Assembly: GCA_000320545.1 (NCBI GenBank)
Contig: ADNK01000407.1
Location: 1-64,000 of the forward strand
From: Bigelowiella natans CCMP2755
Taxonomy: Eukaryota > Protista > Cercozoa
DNA length: 64,000 nucleotides
Reading direction: 5' to 3'
The notes under the pieces were generated by a model. That model searched no databases. It was not told where the DNA came from and saw only the letters and a program-made list of their open reading frames with translations. Within the stretch, counting starts at the first letter, position 1. Each line of letters opens with the position of its first letter. A program made the translations under genes and the position numbers. Shown in pieces: positions 3,701 through 63,050 of the stretch.

Positions 3701-4079
3701 GAGAGACGAGTCACATGATCATATGCAATGATTTCGTATTTTTCGGCAGGCGTGTTGCTTCTATAAGCAAATTTATCGTGAAGCATTTGTGACCTGTTGT
3801 TTTGTTGTAATATTAAATAGCCGGTGTTCTCGAGCTTTAGTCAAAGCTAGGTAAGATAAAACTTCCAAGCAGTTACCGGGCAAATTCTGTGATATTTTGC
3901 GGTGGCTTAAAATTCCCGCAACGTTTCATAAAGCTTGTCAAATGCGTTCCAATTCGTCAGATGAATCACGTTGAAAATAAAATAAAATAAAAAAAGAGGG
4001 ATCATGCTCCCGATCGCAGTTTAGATCCATCAAACTTTTTGCTGAACTCATTCTTACATTTTGGATCACTAGATCACAT

Positions 4080-5090
4080 GATTGATTGGTTTTCCTCCAC
4101 CTCGTGAAACCTGATGTCTAGATATTTGCATTTTCAACATGAGTCTAGTAGCAGTTGTGCATTTCACGTCAACCATGACATGCTAGCATGGCTAGATGGT
4201 GATGTGCCATTTGAAACTAGCTCCAAGTGTTCTTCGGGTACTGCAATCTAGCAATGTTTGCTGCGAAATTTTCGTCACGTGCATCTAGAGCACAAGCTTT
4301 GCGTTGTTCTGCGCACAGCTACACAGTCTAGCCACTCTGGCTAGCTAGCAGTGCTAGAGTGTGTGAATATCCAAATCTGCCACAGACTTCAGACTTGCTA
4401 GCTTGCTGCTAAGGATGGCCACTCTAGAACTGTGACATCTAGACATATGTAGCACATCTAGCACATCTATGGATATGCACATCTAGCTAGACGCGTTCGA
4501 TTGTGTCTGGCATGCTAGTTAGCATGCTAGCTAGCTAGCTCGAGCTGAGCAAAATGCTAGCTATAGCTAGCTAGCTGCTGCCCGAGCGTGCGCGGCATCC
4601 TAGCATCGTCTTTCATAGCTATAGCTAGACAGCGCGCAAGTGTTGTTATTGCTGCAACTATGCTGAGCGAGGTCGTCTACTGCATGCATGCAATCTAGCA
4701 ATACCAGCAATGCTCTAGGAAGCAGAACATCTAGATATCTACCTAGCTGGACATCTAAACATCTCTGGGCATTGTGAGCTGCTGCCACATCTAGACATGA
4801 TGACACGATGCATGCTAGCATCGCATGGCATGGCTAGATGGTGGTGAAATCACTTATTTAGTCTCGTTGCTCAACTAGTCATTGAAGGGTATTGCACTTG
4901 TCTGTGACTTCTAGGCCTGCAGTTGTACTGACCCGTGATGGCAGCACGAATGGGTGCCCAGCACAGCAGCTAGACAACCGACGCTGCAGGGCTACGGGGC
5001 TCCTAGCCTGCTAACTTTGACCTCATACAACACTCGCATCAACATCGCTACATCTAGATCGACTACACTGGTGGTTAAAAGACCTCTTTC
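4080..5090. other. CTAG-rich, TpA-depleted intergenic island 1
   Basis: Dense ctag/gctagc/tctaga/catg/tgca; most remaining TA lie in CTA/TAG; directly downstream of the FBPase stop. Confidence 0.85.
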
Positions 5091-15849: not shown

Positions 15850-17060
15850 TTACGCATGTACGTGGTAATGTACATGCATATGTTCTAGATGTGTTCATTT
15901 ATGACTAATTTAGCTCGCTAAGCTTAATGACACAATAACGAGACATCTATGGTCCATCTAGGGCATGCTAGCATGTATGTAGCCATTGTGTGTCTTAGAC
16001 GTAGCACAAAACCGCAGCTAAGTATACAAGTACACGCATCTAGACAAGTCGCTCTAGCACACATGGTGCGACGATGCGCATCTACAGATATCTAGATATC
16101 TTAAGGCATCTAGCTAGCTAGCTAGACATACATCTAGACATGTCTAGCTAGATGTCCTAATCTGCAATGCGCACAGCTAGACAGCTAGATAGCCTTCAAC
16201 AACATCGATTTGTACATCGCAAGACGGGTGTAATTAATCAATCAAATTTGTTCAACATCGATTTGTACATCAATGACATCTCTGCTAGATCTAGTAGATC
16301 TGCGCAATTTGTGTACAGGTTCATCATGCATATTGATCTAGTGATGGTCTAGTGGTCATGTGGCTACGTGGCTGTAGGATCCAAGATAGCGGGGAGAAAT
16401 GGGCTTCGATGAGCTACATTAGCAGCAATCCCTTCGCGTCGCTGGAGGCAAAGCCGCTGAAGAAGAAAAGGAACAGAAAGAAAAAACGCAAAAACAAAAA
16501 GGAGGATGCCACTATCGCTGATCAAACGAACAAGGTCATTCTAGGAAAAGATGTCAACACTGATGTCAAGGAGACCGAATTGCCACACAAAGATGGAAGG
16601 GGCACCACGAAGAAAGTTTTGACTTCTAGCTTCGGCAACAATCTTCATTCCGCAAGAGTGATGCAAGATTTAAACCCACACGAGGAGGATGAATTCAAAC
16701 GCACACAGGACCGCGTGTTGACACTTGCTACATCAACAGCACAGTCCCGCGCACAAAAGCTAAGCAGCTACCGCAAGCCCGCCAAAAGGTTATGAGGTGG
16801 CCACATATTGTGCACACATCTAGTCATGTTTTGCGTGCACTTTAATGTGCCATGCGAAGTACGCATGATCTAGCACGCATACAGCTATACTAGATAGGGA
16901 TATATCTTCATATGCCGCTCTAACTAGCTTATAAGCTAGCTAGGTGACAACGATTTACAGTCCTGTACTCCATCATGCGATTCTGGGCTGGCTGTGCCCA
17001 TGCTAGCATGCATGCATGTACCGATGATGTAAGCCCATCTCTAGATCTAGCTAGCCAGCG
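15850..17060. other. CTAG-rich, TpA-depleted island 2 (contains K-rich ORF 16352-16795)
   Basis: 14-bp palindromes gatatctagatatc (16087) and ctagacatgtctag (~16134), (ctag)n runs; lies between convergent gene ends. Confidence 0.85.
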
Positions 17061-19899: not shown

Positions 19900-20300
19900 T
19901 AAGCAAATTTGAGAAATAAACACATGCAGACATCTATGCTTCATGCATAGCACAAGCCCTATCCATGCATACAATAGCTAGTCATGGAATAGAAATAAGT
20001 TGCGCGCAGCAATGATTAACACCGTCAGCTAGTCATCCGATATCAATGTCGATCTTTACTAGCTCGATCATGTACTTGTTGTGGTACCCCAGCCGAGCGC
20101 AACGCCACTACTAGTTGTGCATTATATATGCGTGCGGTACAGCGTCACACTCATGCAATATGTTGTTCCTGACTACACACTGAAAATTTTGTCCGAGCAT
20201 CACACTTCCATTATTATATGATAACTAGATAAGCCTATAGAAGCGCCTTGGACAGGCTAGCAGGCTATGCACATACAGGATCGGAGCAATATCAGCAATA
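19900..20300. other. Weaker CTAG/CATG-rich island 3
   Basis: Repeated ctag, atgcat, catg downstream of the calpain 3' end; TA depletion incomplete. Confidence 0.55.
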
Positions 20301-20365: not shown

Positions 20366-22453
20366 TTATGACAACAAGGAACTGACGGTTAGGATCCTAC
20401 ACGAATGGTTCCACGTGCACGTTGCGGTAAGCGTTGCTACAACTATCTTTCTCCCTCTTCTTCCGTCAACACCCGAGAATTCACCTCTCCCAGCAGACCG
20501 TAGTGCTTCTCCTCGCCGCTCGACAGGAGGAGCCTTAAAGTTCAAAGTCACTAAAGGCTCTCTACTCTTCCCACAAGCCTCACATCTGCTGACAACGTCA
20601 ACTCCCAAAGAATTGCTACTGTTATTCCGTGTATTGGAGTTTCGAAATGTGCATCTAGGACACGTCCAGAAGGAAGTAGAGGAGGAGGAGGAGGAGCCAT
20701 TCAAAGGGACTTGTCCGTTCTTTTCTTTGCCGCTGCTACTGATGACAACCCCCGGCCTTCGATATGCGATGTGCATATTGAGTAGCCTCAAGCCAACGGA
20801 CAGCTTCTTTTGTGCTCCACCAGAAATGTGAGAGGAGGTGCCGAGGTATTTTGTAGCAGTGGGAATGCGTTCTTCGCATTTTCCGTACTCCAAGATCAAC
20901 AGCGCAACTGCCCCCCCTTGCAAAAGAGTGAGGTGGTACCCACCGTGTCGGCGTGCGGAGGAGGTTCTTAGGGAGGAAGAGGAGGAGGTCAAAGTGGCAG
21001 AACTTCGCACGATCGCCATCAGCCCCCTGTTGTTGACATTATCACCAACATAATTATCAACAATCATCATCTCCTCATCGTAGCAGCAGCATCATTATAA
21101 ATGGCCACCGACAGCCGAGATAACCCCCTACATATAAGCAGCAGTGACAACGACAACAAACAACAAGAACAACAGCAGATACTACCTACCTCTATTAAAT
21201 AATAATATTATTATTACTACTTGCTACTGCTACTCTTCCATTACTTTACGGCAGTGTCGGGAAGAGGTGCTCGCCGCACGACATCGACCTCATTCGCGCT
21301 AAATATTGACAAGTGAAAAGGGGCGACACGGGCCTGTTGCTGGTGGGATCGTATGCGGAAGACGAGCGGTGTGACTATGTACTCCACGTTCGGCTGCAAG
21401 ATCATCTCGATATGCGCGCTACGCACAGCGCCGGACAGTATTGCGGCTTCACACGCCCACTCCCCGTCGTCCCTGTTGCCCCTGTCGCCGCTATCATCGC
21501 CTTTCCCGCCCCCCGATTTGTTAGCGTGGCGCTGATGGGCATCCACGCTACTGCTACCACTACTACTGCTCGAACAGATGGATAACCCCATATCAGTGTA
21601 GAAGCGTGCGCGACGACCCCTCCCCCTCTTGGTTGGCTGGAGCAGCATGATGTAGCACCATGTGGGCTTACGGACCTTCAGCCTGTACTCGAACCCCCCC
21701 CCGCCGACCAGCATCCTGCCCGCCGCCGCCGGTCCCAACGCGCCTTCATCGGCAAACGTGCGCGTGCTCCACTCTCTGTGGGCTTTGCAGACGTCTACCT
21801 CACTGAACCGCATGAGGAAATCAGAGTAGGTCATCCAGAATGTCCCGTCGTTCTTCAAGGTGGCGTTTCCCAGCAGGGAGCGCAGTTGGAGAGTCCACCT
21901 CTCAGAACTCCGCGCCCATTCCCCAGTCCACTCCTGCCGCCCCCACGGGTTGCGCACGCAAACCAGCCGAAGGGGTGCTGCTGCTGCGGTGTGTTGACTG
22001 ATGATGCTGGTGTTGCCACCGCTGCTGCTGCTGTATTGCTTATACTCCTCCCTTTGTAGCCTCTCGGCAAGCTGTTGGTCGGCACTTATACCAGTGATGG
22101 CGGGCTCCGCATTGGTGGTGGAAGGGTCCTCCCCCCGCACTCCTCCTCTTCCCGCTATCGCACCGCTTCCTCCCCTCTCGCCCCCCCCCCCCATTCCAAA
22201 GCAAGCCTCGATCTTGAGCTGTCGACCAATTGGTATACCCGACACTTCTCTGACGTCCAGAATCGAGTAAGCATGGTTTCCAACAAGACCTACGTCTTTC
22301 AGCCCAAGGCTGTAATGGCCTGTGATGCTGGCACCCATGGGAAAGCCTTCTTGGTGAAACGATAGAAGCCGAGCCCATGTCGCCTCGGAGTCGAACCGAT
22401 CGCTCCCGAACTCAATGCTCTCAGTAGGGCAGCCCTGTTGCACAGTGGTAGTA

Positions 22454-22490
<37 letters not shown>

Positions 22491-22547
22491 GATGTACGAT
22501 GTTGGTTGCAGGTAGGTGCGCATATTAAGAAGAAAAGATGGATGTTG

Positions 22548-22586
<39 letters not shown>

Positions 22587-22625
22587 CTGGGTACAATTTG
22601 TTTCTATTCCGCTTAGGATAATTTG

Positions 22626-22658
<33 letters not shown>

Positions 22659-23275
22659 ATACATATATCACTAGCACTTGTTCGGACATGTGTATCGGTC
22701 GGCTCTAGCATCACCGTCAAGTCTTGCAGCGCCTCGTGGACCCAGCCCCCGGAGATCGCTTGGTAAGAACCGTGGAACTTTGCGTAAGCCTTTTCAAGGA
22801 TGGGCGCCCAGATTACACGACGTGGTGCTTTGGAGTACGCAAGCTGCCATTGATGATGAGCTTCCTGCTCCTCTTTAACGCTTAGAATGAAGGAGGAGGG
22901 GGTGGATGTGGAAGAGGTTTTGCGCTTGTTCTTAGCTCTTTTTTTCTCGCGTACAGGCAGGAAGTTGTCGACCATGATCTGAGGAGGGAAGAGATACCAA
23001 AGAGGGTAATGTTGGAGTGGTGTATATAGGAGGTGTTAAAATGATTTATATTTCGTCCAACAATTATCTATTAATTAGCAGGATGCTACCATTCTCCAGC
23101 CCCCATCGAGGAATAGCCGCACGGTGTAGCGACCCTTCTCCTCCTCGCTCTCATCATTGCCAGGTTGAATGGTTCTTATCCTTGTTTTTGACCGTGAAGA
23201 GAGTGAGCAGTCATTCTTGATTCGAGGGGCACCAACACGAGAGGACGATGGCGGGAAGAATATGTTCTACGCGAA

Positions 23276-23312
<37 letters not shown>

Positions 23313-24191
23313 AGTTGTGTGGTTGGACTCGTTACCCGCACTTCATACATGCGCATACGTGTACTACTATAAAGTACTGCTATAACTACTAACCCTAATA
23401 AGATCAGGTCGGCGCTCTGCCACAACCGCGACAGCTGAGAGAAACCAGCAGTCGCCTACAGAGCCTTGTACGATATCGGTGGAACGGAAGATTCGACTAC
23501 TGCTGCTGCTGCTGCTACTGCCATGATTGCTGGCGCTCCCTCCCTTCGAAGCCAACTTGTACGATGGAGGGCCAAAACGACGCCATTTTAGGCGCAGGAT
23601 GGCACTAGAGTGCCACGTTGCCCTACTGTCGGCCCATAGGAAGAAGCCGCAGCGCCTCTTTGCGTCTCTCTCCGCGCAGCTCCAAAATTCCCGGCCTTGA
23701 TTCACTCCCTCCTTCCCCACGGTGCGGATACGTGCTCTCTTTTTGCATCGGCAGAGAGGCGGTGCTCTGGACGAAGACGACGGCGACAAAGATGGTTGCT
23801 TGCCACTGCCTCTTCGGCCATCCAGCGAGGAAGGGCATGGTGGGAATTGGGGGTCGGTAAATAATGTCGTTGTCGTCGTTGTCGATAAAGAAGCGCCTCT
23901 TTTCCTCTTCATCATCATTTGCATCAATGGATGGAGTGCCTTCTGCTTTTTATAACTCGCTGTTTTCTCCTCATTTTTGGAAGAAGAAATATTAGTAGTA
24001 GTGGTTGTTGTAGTGATAGGAGGAGGAGGAACGGGGGAGGGGAGGGGAAGACTAGTTGTAGTTGTAGCAGCACTAGCTGGAGTAGAAGAAGAAGCATGCG
24101 TGGTATTCTGGCTCATCATTAGCTGTGTACTCACATCTCCATTGGATCTCTTTCTCCGCTCTGGGAAGATTGATGTCTTTGTGGTGGGTTG

Positions 24192-24225
<34 letters not shown>

Positions 24226-24860
24226 TTGCAGCTGGCACTGGTTCTACTAGTGCTGGTGCGTGAAGAGCGACAAATGAAGCATCTAGTGTTACCAGGTTTA
24301 TTGAAATACGTGCATACGCTACATGTCCAGAGATTGCAGCTGCTACTAGCAACATTAGACCACCAAAAGGACGTGACGAAAACAAAAACATCGTTAGTCT
24401 GATTTTTACAATAGAATGACGGGTTGCATTTGATGGACATGAGTAGTGCTTCTTCTTCTTCTTCTTCTTCATCATCATCATCTTCTTCTTCTTCTTCTTC
24501 TTCTTCCCTGTATAGACCTTTTCTCGTTCTCCGATTGGGAGTCAGAACTCCGCCGTAGTTTCTTCTCCACAGTGACCACAGCGCTCGGATTTCTTCGCTT
24601 CTGTGTCGTCCGTTGTGAAAGAGAGATCTCACTGCTGGGCTGGGGTAAGGAAGACTCCGAAGCCTGTTGTGAGGAGGACGACGACGCTTGCTCTCCACAA
24701 GAGAAATGTGCTTCGCAGTGCGCTGCTATCTCAGCCTCGGGATACATCCTGAGAAGGTGGTGGTGGTGGGGAAAAAAGGATGAAGATGGAGAGGAAGATG
24801 GAAAAGCAACTGACACGTGTGCTTCGATTCTCACCCAGAGCAGACCGGGCATGCCCTCAT
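20366..24860 (-). CDS. Calpain-family cysteine protease (calpain-15/SOL-like) with UBZ, RanBP2 and GRF zinc fingers
   Basis: Catalytic motifs QGSVGDCWFLSAVA, GNHAYSIL, RNPWG; also WAPILEKAYAKFHGSYQAISGG and DGTFWMTYSDF. Fingers: WTCSVCTYFN..CFIC, GRF CRC...GREFWSC...CGFFLWAD, C-terminal WTCPRCTFRN..CEACG, and spliced N-terminus MRACPVCSGMYPEAEIAAHCEAHF. Confidence 0.9.
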
Positions 24861-25115: not shown

Positions 25116-26766
25116 ATGGATCTCCGGCAGGATGGGGTACGTCAACCATTCAAATATTTATGGGCTATTGTGAATAGCTTCCACGCTTCGTAAACGTTTA
25201 TCTAACCAAACATACATTTTAAGGCTCCTGGTATCTATCTACTATCTCGTCGCCGTTGTGGGTAGGCCTCCAAAAGATTTCAGGACGCAGTGCACCATCT
25301 GCGGTAGGGATTTCAGTTGTCCAGGAAATTTAAGGGTGATATGATCTCCTTCATTTCTTTGATTTTATTTGAACTGCGATATTGGTATTCTTATTTATAA
25401 GTACATACGCATTTTTTAATTTTATCGTTCGACAAATCAAAATCGAATTACATAAAGCGCGTTTTCTATTCCCTCCCTCCCTCCCCCTCCTTCCGACCAT
25501 TTCCTTCCCTTTCTTCTTCTTTTTATATGCAAAAATATGTATCCCTTGACTGATACAGCGACACCGGAAGAATCATATCCCAATCTTTGATTTCACTTGT
25601 ATCACCTGTGGACGGTCATTTCGGGAGAAGAGAAATCTTGGGGTAGTACTACTGATGGAGGCGAAGGAGGAGGACGATGAAAAACATCGCTGAAACCATA
25701 CCTTGATTCACAGATTTTACCAAAAAATACTACTGTTGCCACTGCTGTCGTTCTCCTGCTCCTGCTCTACCTTATTATATCTTGTCGCTGTGCAGAGACA
25801 CAGACTGATACACACGGGTCAGAAGCCGTACCCCTGCCCGACGTGCAACGCCACCTTCCGGCAACATGTGCATGTTCATCAGCACATTATGGCTCAACAC
25901 AGCCCGGTTCATTTATTTACCTACGATAAATACATTATGCCGACGTCAGATGGGAGGAGGAGAAAATAATATAATTATGTTTGTTTATGTGTTTATTTTG
26001 ACACACGTGCGTGTGTGTGTGTTTGTGCGTTGTATGCGTAATGAGTGACGTGCCATGTAAATGTCGATGTCATGAATACATAATTCTAAGATTCAAAACA
26101 GTACACGCGACACACTCAAATATTTCTCTTCTCTAACTCTCTCTCTCTAATATATACATATTTAAATATATCTGTCTCTCTCTTTTTACTGATGACTCGC
26201 ATCGTCACCAGCATCTAAAAGCGAAATGTAAGCTGTGTGCGATGAAGTTCAGCTCCTCAAAAGAAATACCTGGCCACATGTACTTAAGGCATCCACAGAA
26301 CCGCACTCTGCCGAAGGTGATCTATAGTAGCCATTACAGGAAGGACCCCCCCCCCCTTATAGCAGCTAAATGGCAATGATGATCCAGAGCTTCCAGCATG
26401 CTTGCTAGACAGTGAAATGACGAGGAAGAAGGGAACGTGGATTGGAAATCTATTCTACATGAGTACTGGAAATAAAAGCTATAATTCTGCTTTTAGTGTC
26501 CCTCCTGCCAGAAAACCTTCCTCTTCCCTTCAGGATTGAAGGTGGACCTCTGTACTATTGAACCGTGCATGAATGAACATACACGAGTTTATGGATTCCT
26601 GTGTGAGCCAGGAAGGGGATTTTCTGATCGGTGCAATATTTACTCATTTTCGAACAGCGTCATCGGAGTGGATCTTGCTGTGGGAAAGCTAGGAACGTCA
26701 CGAGAGCTATCGTCACAGCGACAGGAACTATCTCTCCTTGCAAGTCTTGATATCAAGGACGACTAA
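25116..26766 (+). CDS. C2H2 zinc-finger protein (4 fingers)
   Basis: Spliced: CTICGRDFSCPGNLRRHRKNH, CITCGRSFREKRNLGRHRLIHTGQKPY, CPTCNATFRQHVHVHQHIMAQH, CKLCAMKF..H..H; TGQKPY linker. Stop at 26475 or 26766. Confidence 0.9.
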
Positions 26767-26999
26767 TAATGCCAGACAATGTAGGATCCATTCTAAAGAG
26801 AGTCAGATATAAACTCTATTTTTTTTACATCATAAAATTAGATGAAGTCTATCATAGGGAGCGCGCGGCACGCGCACAGACAGGGAGAGGAAAACTACGT
26901 GGATAATAAAGATAGGCGCTTCGCATAGCATATTTCATAATACGAATGTGAATTGTATGTAATCTCCCAGCGGTGGTAAACGAAACAACACGCACGTGT

Positions 27000-28300
27000 A
27001 CAGTGTCTAGAGATGGATCAATACCTGATCAATGTTGTGGATGAATAGAAAAATTATGTTTACGAATTCGAAGCAATGCGATTGATTTCTAGAGGTTTGA
27101 AGCTGGCTTAATCAGGATTTAGAACACTACTAATGTGGACTCAGCTCTGAACTTCCATGCTAGCATGCATGCATCAAAACGGTTTCCGCACGACCGTGCC
27201 ACAGCGTGATGAGCATCTATGCTAATTTTCTCTCCCGCGTGCAATGTCCGATCCTGATGATCATGCACGCAGCTCCGTCAAACCCGGTAACGACGGGGTT
27301 GTGAACAGTGCAGCGCTTTGCGACGCGCTTTGAAGCAGCAGGCAGTTGCAGTTGGTCAAAGAAAGGTCATCAGAACTTGTCCGATGGCCAAACCTCAAAA
27401 AATGACCGAAATGTCAACCCAAATGTCCATTTTCAAGGCCTCAGTGAGCGCGCAAAGTGTGAAAATTCACACCCGTTGTGTGGAGGATGCACGCTGCGCG
27501 TTTGTTCTCTGCCACATTTTGAATGCTTTCTAGCTTTTGCGCGTGTGTTTGACCAAATGTGACATGCACGAAAATTTTCAAAGAAATGCGAGCAAATCCA
27601 ATGTCCATCACATCACACAACGCGCTTGGTCGCGCACAAAAAGCTTCCAAATGCATGTTCTGGCGATTCGTCAAAGGTTTGACGGAGCTGTGGCACATGA
27701 TGCAAATGAACATCGAGAACTACCGACGCGTGGCGGCGCGCAACGTAGATGGACAGTGGCTGCACCATGAACTCGTCGTTTCGATTCCAACGAAGTGCAG
27801 TGGCATCATGACTTCCACATCCCCTCCCTCATGCGACCTTCGCGATTCGAAGGGGTCGTCTCTTGTGTCATTCCAGCTCATCACTCCATCATTCCTGTCA
27901 TGGAAACCATGATCACTGGCCTGAACAAATGATCATTCATGCATGCGCATTTCCAAGATTTGCTTGCGCAGCTCACTTGGACATCGATTACAATTCGCAC
28001 TGCGATGTGATGCTGCACTCGTTTCGCGGCGCTACCGGCCTGCATGTGCTAGTGTGCGCGAAGTGTGCTGCGTGGCGACCACAAGCATCAAACAGCCAAA
28101 AAGCTGTGCTACGCTAAATGATCGAGTCACGTGCATGCTAGCATGGTGTCCATCGCTCTAGTCAATGTCACGCAAGCAGCAATCTAAGCAATGCTAGCAA
28201 CACATCAAGTGCACAAACCCGATCAGCCGATCCGCATTGTGCGATCTGCCATGTACTAGTATAGTGCAATAGCATGCAAAATATCTTGTATTAATGGCAG
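27000..28300. other. Strongly TpA-depleted island 4, possibly containing a mutated gene relic
   Basis: Only 6 TA dinucleotides in 27301-28080 (hand count), 5 of them in CTA/TAG; lies between convergent genes. Confidence 0.9.
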
Positions 28301-28438: not shown

Positions 28439-29241
28439 CTACAGCTCTTTGCCCTGATTACTTTTCTTAGATGGTGCGCGAGAAGTTCTGGTTTTCGACT
28501 TTTTTTCCGTTTTACTTTTTTTCTGCGGTTGCTGCTTTGATCGTCTTTCGCTGCTGCTGCTACTGCTACTACCTTTAGATGTATTTCTTTTTCTTTTTTT
28601 ATCTTTGCGCTTTTCTCCTCTATGCCCATCCTTCCAAACGTCTCTCAGTAGACTCTGTGATTTGCCGAACATCAAGTCGCGCGGGAATTTCGTGGCGTTC
28701 TCTTTAAGAATCTTGTTAGCCACGAAAGATATAATTGTTTGCGTAGGCCGATTGCTACTCCCAACCTCCGCCGCAGCCTTCATGCACAAAGCAAAGAATG
28801 TAGTCCCGTACTAATGGAAATATTGAATGATGATGATGATGGTGATGATCATCTGGATAACAATAACAATATTCGTTGAGTTTGATAAATGTTTGATGAA
28901 CGCGAAGTTATGCCAAAATGATGGTTCTGCTAGTAATAAAAAAATAGCAACGTTTTCATTTCTACGGATGATCAATGCACTGTCGCTGCCACCACCTCTT
29001 CATGACCCAGGTAAAGAACTTGGGATATTGACGTCTCGTCGAGGTTGTATTCTTTCTCGAGCATCTTGAACACATGTGTTCATGATGACTCATCAGCATA
29101 GTCAATGAGGAATTTTCTCACACCAATCAAGTCGAAATAAACGGCTGTTAAGCATCATACATCGAAGCCATTAGCTAATTTTATAAATCACAAAAACACT
29201 CCTTCCCCACTATGCCCTTTCCCCCCTCTTTCCTATACGTG

Positions 29242-29280
<39 letters not shown>

Positions 29281-30130
29281 GCATGTATTAAATTTCAGAA
29301 AAAGTCGGGGCGATATTGAAGAATGGAGTGCTTCCAAACCGAACCAAAAATACACATTAAAACAGATACACATTGAAATAGGGAGTTGCGAAACCTTTGA
29401 AAAGATCCCAATAATCGCAATGGATGCACGCAGCTTCCTTTTCCCATCCAGATGTGCAGGCAAGTCATCACGCGCTTGCGGCAGGAGCTTGCTTTCGCTA
29501 CCGCCGTCCTCGAATAGTGTTTCGAAGAAAGAATATGCCATTTCTAAAAAGTTGCCGATCCTCTTGCTAGTGTCATCGACATCAACCCCTCCGCTAATGA
29601 ATGAAGAGAAAAGTGAATGCCGAAGCTCTCCTCATGATTTTGGATGGTTGTACCTAGAAGATGTATCGCCTGATGCATCATGATCATCATACTCTCCGTC
29701 CTCCGAATCCATGGTCGATGCAGCATGGATGGAAGCTTTTAAATACTATCCAAGGTAGACGGATCGGGTCAAACCCAGAGTCGATAAAGTATTAGTAATG
29801 TCAGCCATTTGTTCGGTGTGTTCGTACGTGTGTTCGTACGTGTGTTTGTTGTAGTGTGACGACCTGGGAAGCCGAGAACTGAGAAGGGTTTATGCCGGTG
29901 CTCCTGATGTCCGACTCCACCTCCTGAGGTAGGTTCCGCTCAGAGAACTCTGATACCTCGGAGAAACCAAAGTGTAGGCCAGGCATTCCCGTGAATAGGA
30001 ATGCGAGCATTGCTAGCCGCACGAGAAGATCCCATGGGATAACTCTTGCCTGATGGATGGGTGGGGTTAGTGTCCAGGAGAACTCGCCATGTGGGACAAA
30101 AATTACCAGGGCCTTCCAGTACATTGACAT
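28439..30130 (-). CDS. Hypothetical protein, signal-like N-terminus, basic tail ending -GKEL
   Basis: Exon-like ORFs 29801-30130, 29245-29541 and 28439-28789; hydrophobic LLVRLAMLAFLFTG near the start. Confidence 0.5.
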
Positions 30131-41040: not shown

Positions 41041-41850
41041 TGTCAGTCACTAAACAACAAAATTTGCACGCATCATCATCCGCACACGCGTGCATCTCTA
41101 GATCTGCATGTCTAGACGTGCTAGCGTGGACCAGATGTGAGTGCAGCAGCAGCAACAACTCATGCACGCATCTAGACATCTTGCTGCGCACAATAGCAAC
41201 TGCTAGACTGGTTCAAAAATTTCGTCATGAAGATTCACTCGCCTCACCGGATGCACAAAATTTCTCTCACAATTGCGCGTAGCGCCTACAAGCAAGCCCG
41301 TGACAGTGTCCAGACCTAGAGACGTCAATCGAAAATGACTGCTTGAAAAGTCCATCACGTCATGCTAGCTAGCTAGCCTAGCACAGCTACAGGCAGCATG
41401 CATCGCATGCGAGCCAAAGCTAGCAAAGCGCGGTGGCAGCCTTTTCATGTTCCGGTTCACCCGTGCATTGATTCTAACATAACAAAGTGTCATTCTTTGG
41501 CAAATTTGAAGCATGTGACTTTGTTGAGCTGTCACCGCACTCTCACACAACCAGACCCAGAAACTAGCAGCCAAGCTAGCTGTCGATCTGACCAGGCGTG
41601 CTAGCGTGCTAGCGTGCTCTGCAACAACACAACGTTCAATGTTTTTGAATGATGTGCTAGGATACTTTTCTCGTCCGCTTCCTCCTTGCAATCGTGCTAT
41701 GTCACTTTCTCACAGCTCCAATCGTTCCACATGCGTCCCCGCCTGCTGTCTAGCTGTTCCCTCATCTCGTCTCATCCCGAGAGTTGCAAATGGTGGTCAC
41801 CCAGCTTCCCGAACATGTTGTAGCTAGAATCACGGGGATGTTTAATGTGC
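41041..41850. other. CTAG-rich, TpA-depleted island 6
   Basis: Hand count for 41041-41820: about 26 TA, about 17 in CTAG, only 2 outside CTA/TAG. Confidence 0.9.
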
Positions 41851-43749: not shown

Positions 43750-44700
43750 CATTGGACCCAAAACGTTGGTAGGTGTGTTCGACCGTGTCCTATCGGTACA
43801 TAGTACGTAGCTTGCCCTGGCACGCAGCATGGCGCATGTAGCATCGCATCGGCCAGTTCTAGCTCTGGAGCAACTGCTAGGATTGCAGAAGACTATAGGG
43901 ACTTATAAGACTTCTAGATTTGCACTAATCGACGAGATATCTACGATCGCGATGGCACGGTGCGGGCCACATCTACAGAAAATCACAAAATTTGAGCTTT
44001 TTGATGCGTCTAGCGTGGCCAATTGTTGCCAATGTTGCCATTTTTTTCAATGATTTCATTTCACAACATTGCGCTGCTCAAATGCATGAGCATGAGTGTG
44101 ACAAAATGCAAGTGCAGCGCACGCACAAGCATGCAAGGCTGTGCAATATGCCAAGCTAGACATGCTACACAGCATGAGCGATCGAGCAGCAGAGCTATAT
44201 AGCTAGCTAGCTAGCCTAGTAGCGAGAGCGCAGCTAGCTCTAGCTAGCTAGCTAGTTAGTAGAGCGCTAGAGCGCACGTACCAGCGTAATCTAGCAACAT
44301 ATAACGAACGACATCTAGACATCTAGATGTGCTACTGTATAGTATGGTTAGACGACAAGTATGTACTAGTGTAGATGGAATCAGCTGCACATAGTCAGCT
44401 ACGTACGTACATGTTTGACATTGCCCATCGTAGATTCCTATCCATCATTGCTACTAGTGCATGCAGACTTAACACAATGAGGAGTAGTCTTGAAGTGCAT
44501 GCGCATGAACCGTGCACATCTAGCTCAACAAACCACCATCATGCTAGCTAGCTAGCATGGTAGCATGTCTATGACATGTGTTAATATCTAGACATGTGTG
44601 CTCAGCTCTTCGCAAGTTCATTGTACATCATTTTCATCATTGCTGATCATCTACACATCTACAATTGGTGCAATCAACATAGACTGTCATTACACGTGTT
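43750..44700. other. CTAG-rich island 7
   Basis: (agct/ctag)n runs at 44200-44270, acatctagacatctagatgt at 44311; between convergent RING1 and PSRP4. Confidence 0.85.
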
Positions 44701-59285: not shown

Positions 59286-62103
59286 ATGGCAAAAGGTATT
59301 TTCCATCATCCTACAAATTCTGTTAAAAAGCACTAACTTGCCTGTTCAACAATTAGTGTCGCTGCGCGACTTAGCGCCGCCGAAGCGATGAGGAAAAAGA
59401 TCAACGCTATGCTGATGGCAAAAGGCGTATTGAAGAAAGGTGGGTCATCTTAATCAGCTGGACTAAATGAAACTTCGGAAACTGATGGAAGCTCTTCTAA
59501 TAGGCGATACCCCGACTGCTTCGCCAACTGTATCCAAGGAAATATCGATAAACGATTCTGCAAACCGAAATGTTCTCATGAAGAAATCTATTCACGTTAT
59601 GGTCGTTTTCCTTGGAGGCATCACCATGATTACATTTAAAATCTCACTTTCCGCATTCTTTAGATCGAAAATCAAAGCAAAACAAAAGTAATTGTGAAAG
59701 GCACATACGTGGCTCCAGGTTGTAATTTCGAACCTGAGATGTAGAAATTCAACTAATTCTATTTATAATTCAAGGGTCAACACCATCTCCAGGGGTCAGA
59801 CCGTTATACCTGCTTCTTACAGCAACATCGCATGAAGGTATTTGGTATCCTCTCCTCGTTCGCCTGGAATCTAATCCATTCCCCAATAGATGTCGCAAAG
59901 GCGGAAGGGATCATTAACAAGTTTATATCTGCTGGAAAACAAGAAAAGTCTGTCCCAAAGAGTTCCGATGGAGGGCTGGTGATACACTCCAAGGCTGTTA
60001 AAGAAAAGAAAAAAACACCTAGTTTTTCCACACTCTCGCTACCAAAAAATATAGGCGCGACCTCAAAAGTTGGTGTAGAAAATGCGAAGACAAAGAAGAT
60101 TCCCATCTCCTTGAGTATCTCCATGTGCAAGTTGATGGAGTACCCTCTTCTCGAGAAGCTATCCGGTCCCAACAATGCCTATTTGGATCACATCAACAAG
60201 ACCTCGGGTGCGACAGTCACGATTCGAGGGGAGGGATCATCTATGTCAAGCTCCGAAAAGCTTCATTTTCATGTTTCCGCGATAAACGATTCTGTTCTGA
60301 ATTCGGCGGTAAATCTGGCCGGGAATCTTCTGGAGACCATTTATCAAGACTATCGAGTGAAGACAGGCGCAGGATCTGTTCGAACGGAATCCGCTCCACC
60401 CGCTCCGACGTCGGCACCCCCTTCTTTACCACCTGGAATAATAGCTCACGGTGGTTCTCAGCCTCAACCCCCACCACATGCTCCCGCTGCTCCTGCTATG
60501 AACTACGGTGGTTATAGAGCGCCGTATTCAAATCATCATCCTCATCAACCCCCTCCGGGATACGGCAGCTACCCACCTCCCCATGGATACAACAACAGCT
60601 ATTATGGATATAATAATAATAATAATCAGCAGCAGCAGCAGCAGTACCCAGGTGCTTATGGGGGGCAGCCATATTATAGTAGTGGTGGAGGTCCCATGCC
60701 TATCCCCTCAATGCCACCAACTTCTCAATATAACCCTGCAAGGCCGGAGTACAACCCAGCGGCGGCGGCCTCGCTTCCTTACTCTGGTCCCTCTGTGGTA
60801 GGCCCAGAGCCAAATCAAAAAACTGCTGTAAATAGTGATAATAGCGACGAAGACGATGATGGTAGGGATAGGAACAGGAGCCGAGACAGAAGAAGAGATA
60901 GGGACGACCGCAGGCGGAGAAGTGAGTCCCCACCTAGACGTAAGCGGTTCTCTGAGGGTCCAGTAAAGAGGAAGTTTGAGGAAGATGACGAATCATCTGA
61001 TGGCGACGATTCGCCGAAAAGAAAACGCTCTTTCCGCGAGGAACCCCGAAAGGTTGCGGATCTGCGGTGTTTGTTAAATGAAGTCGTTCTTGTACATTGT
61101 GTGATTGACCTTTATTGCCGCCGTCGAAGATTGGAAAGAAATTTAGGGAGATCGGAACCGATGGTTTCACTCAAATACAACAATTGCTGTGTCTGGAAAT
61201 ATGACCACGATCTAGTTATTATTTTGCAATGTGTGTGGGTGTGTGGGTGTGTGTGATTCGTTGCACATACAATATCTAATTTCATTAAATAATTGGATTA
61301 ATCTCACTGAAATTCGTATACATACTACTACACCGTCAGCATCTTCGGTAACTCTCTTCCGTTGTTGATGTCATGCTAACACCATACTTTGCATCATAAA
61401 TTTATAACACTCAGAGACCGGCATTTTCGGAAGAATCGAAGGTGTTTTTGGCGCAAATAATCATTTTGTGTTTTATTGATTGAATTCAGGAATGCCTTTA
61501 CGAATTCGTATTCTATGAAGGGTTTAAAATTATAGTTAGATTTTGATCGCGAAACTAAAGAAATGATGCCCAAAATTTAAATGTGTTTTTAAGTCCGATT
61601 CAGGAGAGAAGAAATTTAAGTTCACTTCACCTCCTCCACCGCCACCTTGTCTCGACACCCCTCCTCCTCCGCCCCCAATCCATGAAGAGAAAGTTGAGCC
61701 AGAATCTTTGGGTCAACGTGTTAACAATATGGATAAAGGTACGGATACGAAATTCAAATTACTTCGTGGCTTATGGTCGCTTTGTTCAGATGAGTGGGTG
61801 TCGACGGGATTGGGAAGGTTAGTAAATTATGGCGATAGTGATAGCGAACAAGAGGATGTAGAAGTTGTTTTGCTTGATAAAGACGGGGAGAAATGGCGTC
61901 AAAAGAAGCCAAAAAAGGGAGCAAGAAAGAGTGTTTCGTTTTTATCACACACCGTGGCTTACAAAGCACTGCGTGCATCCGGAAAATCCATCGATGAATC
62001 TGCTGAAGAGGCTCTGAGAGAATTGAGCCCAGCAGACAGGCAAAGGATCCCACCAATCACAAACACTGTCAAAGAATCCGGAGTCAAATTTTGGATGCAA
62101 TGA
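59286..62103 (+). CDS. KHDC4: KH-domain splicing-associated protein, KHDC4/BLOM7/RIK family
   Basis: EISINDSANRNVLMK, VIVKGTYVAPG..RPLYLLL, KLSGPNNAYLDHINKTSGATVTIRGEGS..LHFHVSA..AVNLAGNLLETI; P/Y/G-rich and RD/RS-rich tail; LVNYGDSD. Confidence 0.85.
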
Positions 62104-62249: not shown

Positions 62250-63050
62250 GGTATATCATGCCATTGCCTGCACTAGCTAGTGCATTTCGATGCGCAGCTT
62301 ATGGCAGCATCAAAACGCTTTGATCCCAGCCAGACTAGCAGAGCTGCGACAAATCTATGCAGGGAGTTAGCGCGCATGTGCAGCTGCGCATGCGTCTACA
62401 ACAATACGATACGATATAGCATGTAGCAGACGCAAATCTAGACTGCTGGCATGTGTAAAGAGTGCTTGTGTAAGTTGTTAGCTGACGACGCTACGTGCGT
62501 TCTAGCGTTGTCCGACATGCTGCGCGGTCTAGCTAGCTAGCGCTGCATGTTGCACATGCTACGTGGCTAGCATGTACTTCTACGTGCACATCTAGAGAAG
62601 CATCTAGAGATGTGCACTAGCTAACTAGATACAGCGCATGTTGTCAGCAATGCAATTGTGAGGAAACGCAATGAAGATGTTTAGATGTGCGTCAGTCGCG
62701 CTAGGCATTGTAGCATATACGTACAACAAGACAGCCTACGGCTAGCTAGACCCAAATGGGCCTAGCTAGCTAGCTAGCTAGCGAGTAGCGAGCGAATGGT
62801 TGTTGCCTAGTTCTAGAGTTGCAAGTGTCGAACGCTAGAAACAGGCATACTAGCATACGTTAAACGTACGCTAGCACGACACCAGAGGCCTGCCTGCAAG
62901 GTGCTGCCCAGCTAGCCAGTCTACAAAAAATAACATGCTGTGCCACCAATTGTATTTGTATATTCATTGCAGAAACGAAAAAGCACAACATAAGCTAGAT
63001 AAGCGCTGAAACCGCTGCTCTGCATAGCTACATTAGGATGACTATTAAAA
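62250..63050. other. CTAG-rich island 9
   Basis: (ctag)n at 62761, many tctaga/gcatgc; between convergent genes; an intact (TA)n tract lies just outside at ~62182-62218. Confidence 0.85.

Follow-up and report, generated by a model that had tools for sequence, protein, structure and literature searches.

A TA-poor island in Bigelowiella natans, its resident transposon and a probable host mutator of TpA sites

The island at 27301-28080 of the window, a 64,000-nucleotide stretch of Bigelowiella natans CCMP2755 (contig ADNK01000407.1, positions 1 to 64,000), is severely depleted in TA dinucleotides. We attribute this, with a probability of roughly 0.88, to a host mutator that changes TpA to TpG or CpA in confined domains made up of transposon and foreign DNA. 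Both real and out of the ordinary, the process is already known from a 2026 preprint on this species (Mettrop et al., bioRxiv 10.64898/2026.01.13.699255), which makes the earlier statement that no named system fits the pattern outdated. What the present locus adds is a non-viral DNA transposon as target, an insertion site that decides the outcome, and a 3' neighbour that alters the rate. Non-viral targets lend support to a point that the preprint left open (bioRxiv 10.64898/2026.01.13.699255).

In mutation-accumulation lines of B. natans, two integrated viral regions were hypermutated about 1000-fold, with de novo changes that were almost only TpA to TpG or CpA, arose in a subset of lines and reached ~6e-7 per site per generation (bioRxiv 10.64898/2026.01.13.699255). 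The targets of de novo change were NCLDV and virophage inserts only, with TEs named as 'potentially' affected; the preprint further reports clusters of 1-kb windows poor in TpA and rich in CpA/TpG, along with TE-type domains in the set of genes poor in TpA (bioRxiv 10.64898/2026.01.13.699255). An ADAT2-type deaminase was proposed and a candidate named, and the process was compared with RIP, ADAR and APOBEC; MITEs, CTAG and flanking context go unmentioned in the main text (bioRxiv 10.64898/2026.01.13.699255). The name of the gene model suggests that our window belongs to scaffold 6, not to the viral regions of the preprint (scaffolds 10 and 146).

TA depletion and anatomy of the island

The flagged interval (780 bp) contains six TA dinucleotides, at 27531, 27721, 27746, 27989, 28033 and 28050, where 47.5 are expected from local base composition or 37 from the window-wide observed/expected ratio (o/e) of 0.78. 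The scarcity of TA that had been described is thereby borne out (Poisson P(<=6) = 3.4e-10). TA has an o/e of 0.13 here, CG one of 1.08, and the abundance of CA and TG that had been described is reflected in values of 1.51 and 1.65. Our recount agrees that five of the six remaining TAs stand in CTA or TAG context; two (27531 and 28050) lie in the middle of 8-bp scars left by insertions. The neighbouring DNA has ordinary TA, as had also been stated: the flank to the left of the transposon shows an o/e of 0.79, and the other 780-bp stretches of the window have a minimum of 18 TAs and a median of 45.

A single transposon copy accounts for 392 of the 780 bp, and the TA-poor zone as a whole consists of this copy and ~400 bp rightward of it (Table 1). 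The element is a MITE, and in the copy of the window the terminal bases at the left end are altered. The GC that follows the right TIR is likely the target duplication, judging from the empty site in a paralog. Among 145 candidates of the family, at least 40 full matches were scored at 87-94%; genome-wide, 160 TIR ends were found, and the copies number at least ~80. Summed contig depth over the MITE (27270-27650) is 150-300x the single-copy depth, a rough measure that does not equal copy number but suggests more copies in the genome than the ~80 intact-ended ones assembled. Copies end in CAC..GTG and are bordered by a target duplication of 2 bp in 33 of 49 cases, of 3 bp only in 6, and of neither kind in 10; four of ten mismatched duplications are compatible with a TA-to-CA/TG change. 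With these termini, the short TIR and the 2-3-bp target duplication, the MITE resembles the CMC superfamily (CACTA/EnSpm, Mirage, Chapaev), and its copies also bear hairpin-type footprints. It differs in its terminus, which reads CACAG and not CACTA. A profile search for an autonomous CMC partner (PF02992, PF18759), run without a positive control, returned no match.

The MITE is hosted by an older two-copy repeat. The paralog is free of the insertion seen in the window, has a related MITE of its own at another position and shows more complete TA erasure. Aligned to it, 16 of 28 window TAs read TG or CA and 2 show other changes, a comparison in which the pair alone gives no direction. The island around the paralog (L037, G000:C258:30750-32000) has hardly any TA left and is sharply set off from TA-rich flanks, and its erasure fades gradually across the first ~250 bp of the island. 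Further unannotated TA-free repeat families adjoin the MITE at other loci (L004, L006, L010, L016, L048 and L054); one such family has a hairpin inside it, and L010, L016 and L048 contain a tandem unit of ~400 bp.

With a plus-strand zinc-finger gene on its left side and ORFs of the minus strand on its right, the island probably lies in a tail-to-tail spacer, if the right-hand ORFs are genic. Gene searches were run on individual exons. An Rfam search of the window gave no match, and nor did a Pfam search of the 117-aa ORF inside the island; long Tyr-free ORFs in islands are an expected by-product of the loss of TAA, TAG and TAY. Elsewhere the window contains a calpain gene (Peptidase_C2) that also encodes RanBP and GRF zinc fingers (21241-24698, minus strand) and a gene for a KHDC4/BBP-like KH-domain protein (59832-61256, plus strand). 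The latter protein is 100% identical to one that has chlorarachniophyte sequences as its nearest relatives and clusters with the JGI gene model Bigna1 85810.

Table 1. Features of the island and its surroundings, in window coordinates.
Feature	Position	Strand	Remarks
Left neighbour, C2H2 zinc-finger exon	25703-25969	+	zf-H2C2_2 E=2.9e-8, below curated cut-off
Left neighbour, last exon (gene model inferred)	end ~26766 (whole neighbour 25703-26766)	+	probable
Older two-copy repeat hosting the MITE	26881-28254		paralog G000:C258 (~32323 to ~30975, minus)
Scar NNNN-CTAG-NNNN, left of MITE	27156-27167
Non-autonomous TIR DNA transposon (MITE), ~420 bp, CMC-like	27268-27692		2 TA in 425 bp
Left TIR core, 15 bp	27270-27284	+	perfect inverted repeat with 27676-27690
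Ancestral TA site 1	27288-27289		TA here; family TA 20, TG 13, CA 12, CG 0
Scar inside MITE	27526-27537		4-bp duplication around CTAG; no counterpart in consensus
Ancestral TA site 2	27672-27673		CA here; family TA 18, TG 18, CA 9, CG 0
Right TIR (15-bp core and terminal TG)	27676-27692	-	followed by GC
TA-poor right flank	27693-28088		5 TA (o/e 0.23); made up of a section of the older repeat and ~200 bp without counterpart in paralog
Scar NNNN-CTAG-NNNN, right flank	28045-28056
Scar NNNN-CTAG-NNNN, right edge	28134-28145
Right neighbour ORFs	28439-29541	-	no Pfam match

Direction of change and dependence on the insertion site

The loci analysed amount to 233 kb and were picked for carrying this MITE, and so are not a random sample of the genome. 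Compared with the MITE consensus, T>C is found at 31.6% of TA (18/57) and at 0.5-1.3% of TC, TG and TT, the value for TT being 1.3%; C>T stands at 1.1% for CG and 1.0% for CA. The contrast between C>T at CA and T>C at TA upholds the prediction that the pattern is opposite to fungal RIP. Two sites of the MITE were ancestrally TA, and across 45 copies each of them occurs as TA, TG or CA (Table 1), with CG in 0 of 90. All nine two-site state combinations are present; because single origins could yield no more than five in the absence of recombination, the changes must be recurrent. In raw reads of the family, site 1 (27288-27289) likewise occurs in these three states, its two letters showing T>C at ~27% and A>G at ~29%.

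Whether a copy keeps its TAs depends on where it has inserted. Ancestral TAs are retained in 7 of 44 cases within TA-poor flanks versus 21 of 28 within normal flanks (p=9e-7), and flank TA level correlates with retained TA (Spearman 0.72, p=2e-8). Divergence of the MITE at other sites is independent of flank TA (rho -0.11, p=0.46), so age does not explain the loss. TA profiles around 49 copies are bimodal, and the erased domains extend from about 0.5 kb to more than 2 kb and are rather sharply bounded. When TA is erased from normal DNA in silico, the product matches island composition (GC 0.50 vs 0.51, CA 1.8 vs 1.66, AG 0.83 vs 0.85). CG has a rho of 0.86 that is equal in islands and normal DNA; this unchanged value, together with the missing CG state at the two main sites, rules against 5mC deamination as the cause. 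Three polarised tests and the published mutation-accumulation data agree on a regional change from TA to CA/TG on both strands, as originally predicted. The change is nearly exclusive to TpA and strikes each site once.

It could be argued that no local process acts, and that the island is TA-poor merely as a copy of a repeat whose consensus is TA-free. Part of this holds: the consensus has 2 TA in 416 bp, the MITE forms about half of the flagged interval, and over half of the island is repeat sequence with a nearly TA-free consensus, in part the situation that had been named in advance as refuting the original prediction. A TA-poor consensus is nevertheless no refutation of a local process, since the remaining TAs change according to insertion site. 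The unique flanks are TA-poor as well, the states recur, and the TA-free consensus is itself left unexplained by copying. Flank-dependent TA loss and the conversion of scars, which occurs in islands only, largely refute this explanation, and we regard it as very improbable.

The single-copy flanks of the island show no SNP in four read runs, but with ~30 TA sites a rate of 1e-6 per generation would go unseen. That no ongoing change is visible at the locus is expected from the few remaining targets.

Insertion scars and sequence context

The 8-bp scars consist of a 4-bp duplication around a constant CTAG (NNNN-CTAG-NNNN), and alignment to the MITE consensus identifies them as insertions. This structure surrounds 211 of 992 CTAG words versus ~1% for other 4-mers, and the duplicated 4-mer prefers C or A first and G or T last. 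The scars look like excision footprints of some element with CT..AG ends. A search of 233 kb for a full element with such ends and a 4-bp duplication found none, and literature searches turned up neither the scars nor this MITE. Dense clusters lie in the window at 4065-4830, 15964-17037, 20221-20253, 41094-41746, 44212-44362 and 62331-62908, and also in most sampled loci. A second scar class in the MITE alignment comprises 3-4-bp insertions (17 of 80 insertions) built from a 2-bp duplication and filler from its own reverse complement, the hairpin-type footprint expected of CMC or hAT excision. Transposons land in and leave these MITEs very often.

Where local TA o/e is below 0.1, 66 of 116 scars (57%) read CCAG or CTGG, versus 7 of 82 in normal DNA, which is about chance; the comparison of 70/144 with 7/82 yields p=1.4e-10. 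No further single-letter variant of the scar is enriched in islands, and a check of the CCAG/CTGG scars for pseudo-replication revealed 1 duplicate in 293.

These converted scars bear on the opposite polarity, in which ordinary RIP-like or 5mC-driven CpA-to-TpA change would enrich normal DNA in TA and spare the islands. Singleton gains of TA from CA or TG, at 3.0 per copy outside islands vs 0.55, speak for it, as does the AT-biased mutation spectrum genome-wide (bioRxiv 10.64898/2026.01.13.699255). Protection alone, however, predicts a TA o/e near 1, not 0.04, and the scars of normal DNA would have required nearly 100% change from CCAG to CTAG in sequence where CCAG/CTGG words are common (635 counted). 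TG and CA can both occur at one site only if TA is the hub. In the accumulation lines, de novo change runs from TA to CA/TG and refutes this polarity, which we consider hardly credible.

The original prediction had confined the change to D-T-A, or T-A-H on the other strand. To examine context, NTAN retention was expressed relative to normal DNA, after masking of MITEs and scars and with adjacent blocks serving to delimit the islands. Most DTAH words are retained in islands at 0.03-0.04 (GTAC 0.09, n=8), words with one CTA/TAG side at 0.06-0.13, and CTAG at 0.89, a value inflated by late scar insertions. In the strongest islands, 63 of 125 CTAGs are exact or near-exact scars, and the excess of surviving CTAG stems partly from such insertions. 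Table S2 of the preprint lists 231 de novo mutations, and in a hand tally for scaffold 10 with collapsed strands the changes number 67 at TAA, 67 at TAT, 52 at TAC and 20 at TAG; TAG takes 20/206 (9.7%) vs about 21% expected (p=1e-5), the expectation coming from non-viral DNA only, so that the normalisation is rough. Both estimates place the TAG rate at ~1/3 of that of TAH, which makes the D-T-A rule a preference. TpA change is about 3-fold slower when the A is followed by G, and CTA/TAG is not immune: CTAG scars are converted, and de novo changes fall there too. The rule stands as a preference and fails as an absolute one. For the same scaffold, T>C at CTA is seen 17 times and A>G at TAG, its counterpart on the other strand, 3 times (p=0.003 for a departure from 1:1), a split that may reflect the strand composition of the viral insert.

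Proposed mechanism and relation to known systems

After insertion, TpA sites undergo one A:T-to-G:C transition each, on either strand, in domains that may be targeted through silent chromatin. In B. natans, H3K9me3 with H3K27me3 constitutes one state that marks TEs and repressed genes (bioRxiv 10.1101/2025.03.17.643675). On the chemistry, we lean slightly towards deamination of A to inosine by a candidate TadA/ADAT2-type enzyme, with inosine then read as G at replication. The ADAT2/3 candidates are Bn78255 and Bn77986; the genome has six deaminase-domain loci, which is in line with housekeeping needs. The low TA content of the MITE consensus may go back to ancestors that had resided in such domains, and the MITE, once without targets, may have gone on amplifying. 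The surviving TAs would be late arrivals (CTAG scars, ordinary CA-to-TA changes) or slow CTA/TAG contexts.

The same direction would result if the thymine of TpA carried a modification (5hmU or base-J-like) and mispaired with G. From sequence, T-to-C change is indistinguishable from A-to-G change on the other strand, and dinoflagellates and kinetoplastids are known to label repeats with modified T. A preference for TpA is, however, typical of TadA-family enzymes, and an exon-wise genome search for TET/JBP, weak for want of a positive control, gave no credible match, its one Tet_JBP hit being sub-threshold and containing stops (E=0.0014). We consider a modified thymine unlikely. The preprint remarks on the TpA preference for ADAR (bioRxiv 10.64898/2026.01.13.699255).

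A Pol-eta-like enzyme that fills gaps in transposon-damaged DNA and places G opposite T would also act in this direction. Pol eta produces A-to-G changes at WA with TA as its hottest site, and the abundance of excision-type scars in the islands points to frequent repair. Scars are dense in TA-normal DNA as well, however, and the de novo spectrum is almost purely one of TpA transitions. AA is undepleted in islands (rho 1.19) and T>C at TT falls far below that at TA; with AA/TT untouched, errors of this type are disfavoured, and we judge them distinctly improbable.

Homology alone does not trigger the change, since MITE copies in normal flanks keep their TA and a single-copy NCLDV insert is affected. 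We tentatively entertain, at somewhat less than even odds, a general chromatin-guided 'reverse RIP' that is not virus-specific, acts in kb-sized domains on transposon nests between genes at any copy number and with T-A-H preference, and is escaped by TA-free families. If true, this would mark the first case in nature of A-to-I editing of chromosomal DNA in the service of genome defence. A natural mutator that turns chromosomal A:T into G:C is uncommon, and the enzyme responsible would be of interest to work on genome defence and base editing. The two TA sites of the MITE and the CTAG scars offer internal reporters for domain mapping and inosine assays.

Compared with the TpA hypermutation of Mettrop et al., the island agrees in species, in the change from TpA to TpG/CpA, in affecting both strands and in its regional character. 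It differs in being a non-viral, non-coding MITE in a gene region, and adds the dependence on position and the slowdown by a 3' G. With fungal RIP it shares regional, dinucleotide-specific transitions of repeats on both strands that end when the targets are gone; direction and base are opposite, the hot change being the reverse of C>T at CA. Defence by deamination is the idea common to ADAR, TadA-ADAT2 and the APOBEC3 hypermutation of retroelements, and the A-to-G change with 5'-T preference is shared with ADAR and TadA. In contrast to these systems, the substrate here is the chromosomal DNA of an element without an RNA stage, and the enzyme is a candidate. A 3' G is favoured by ADAR, whereas it is disfavoured at the islands of B. 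natans.
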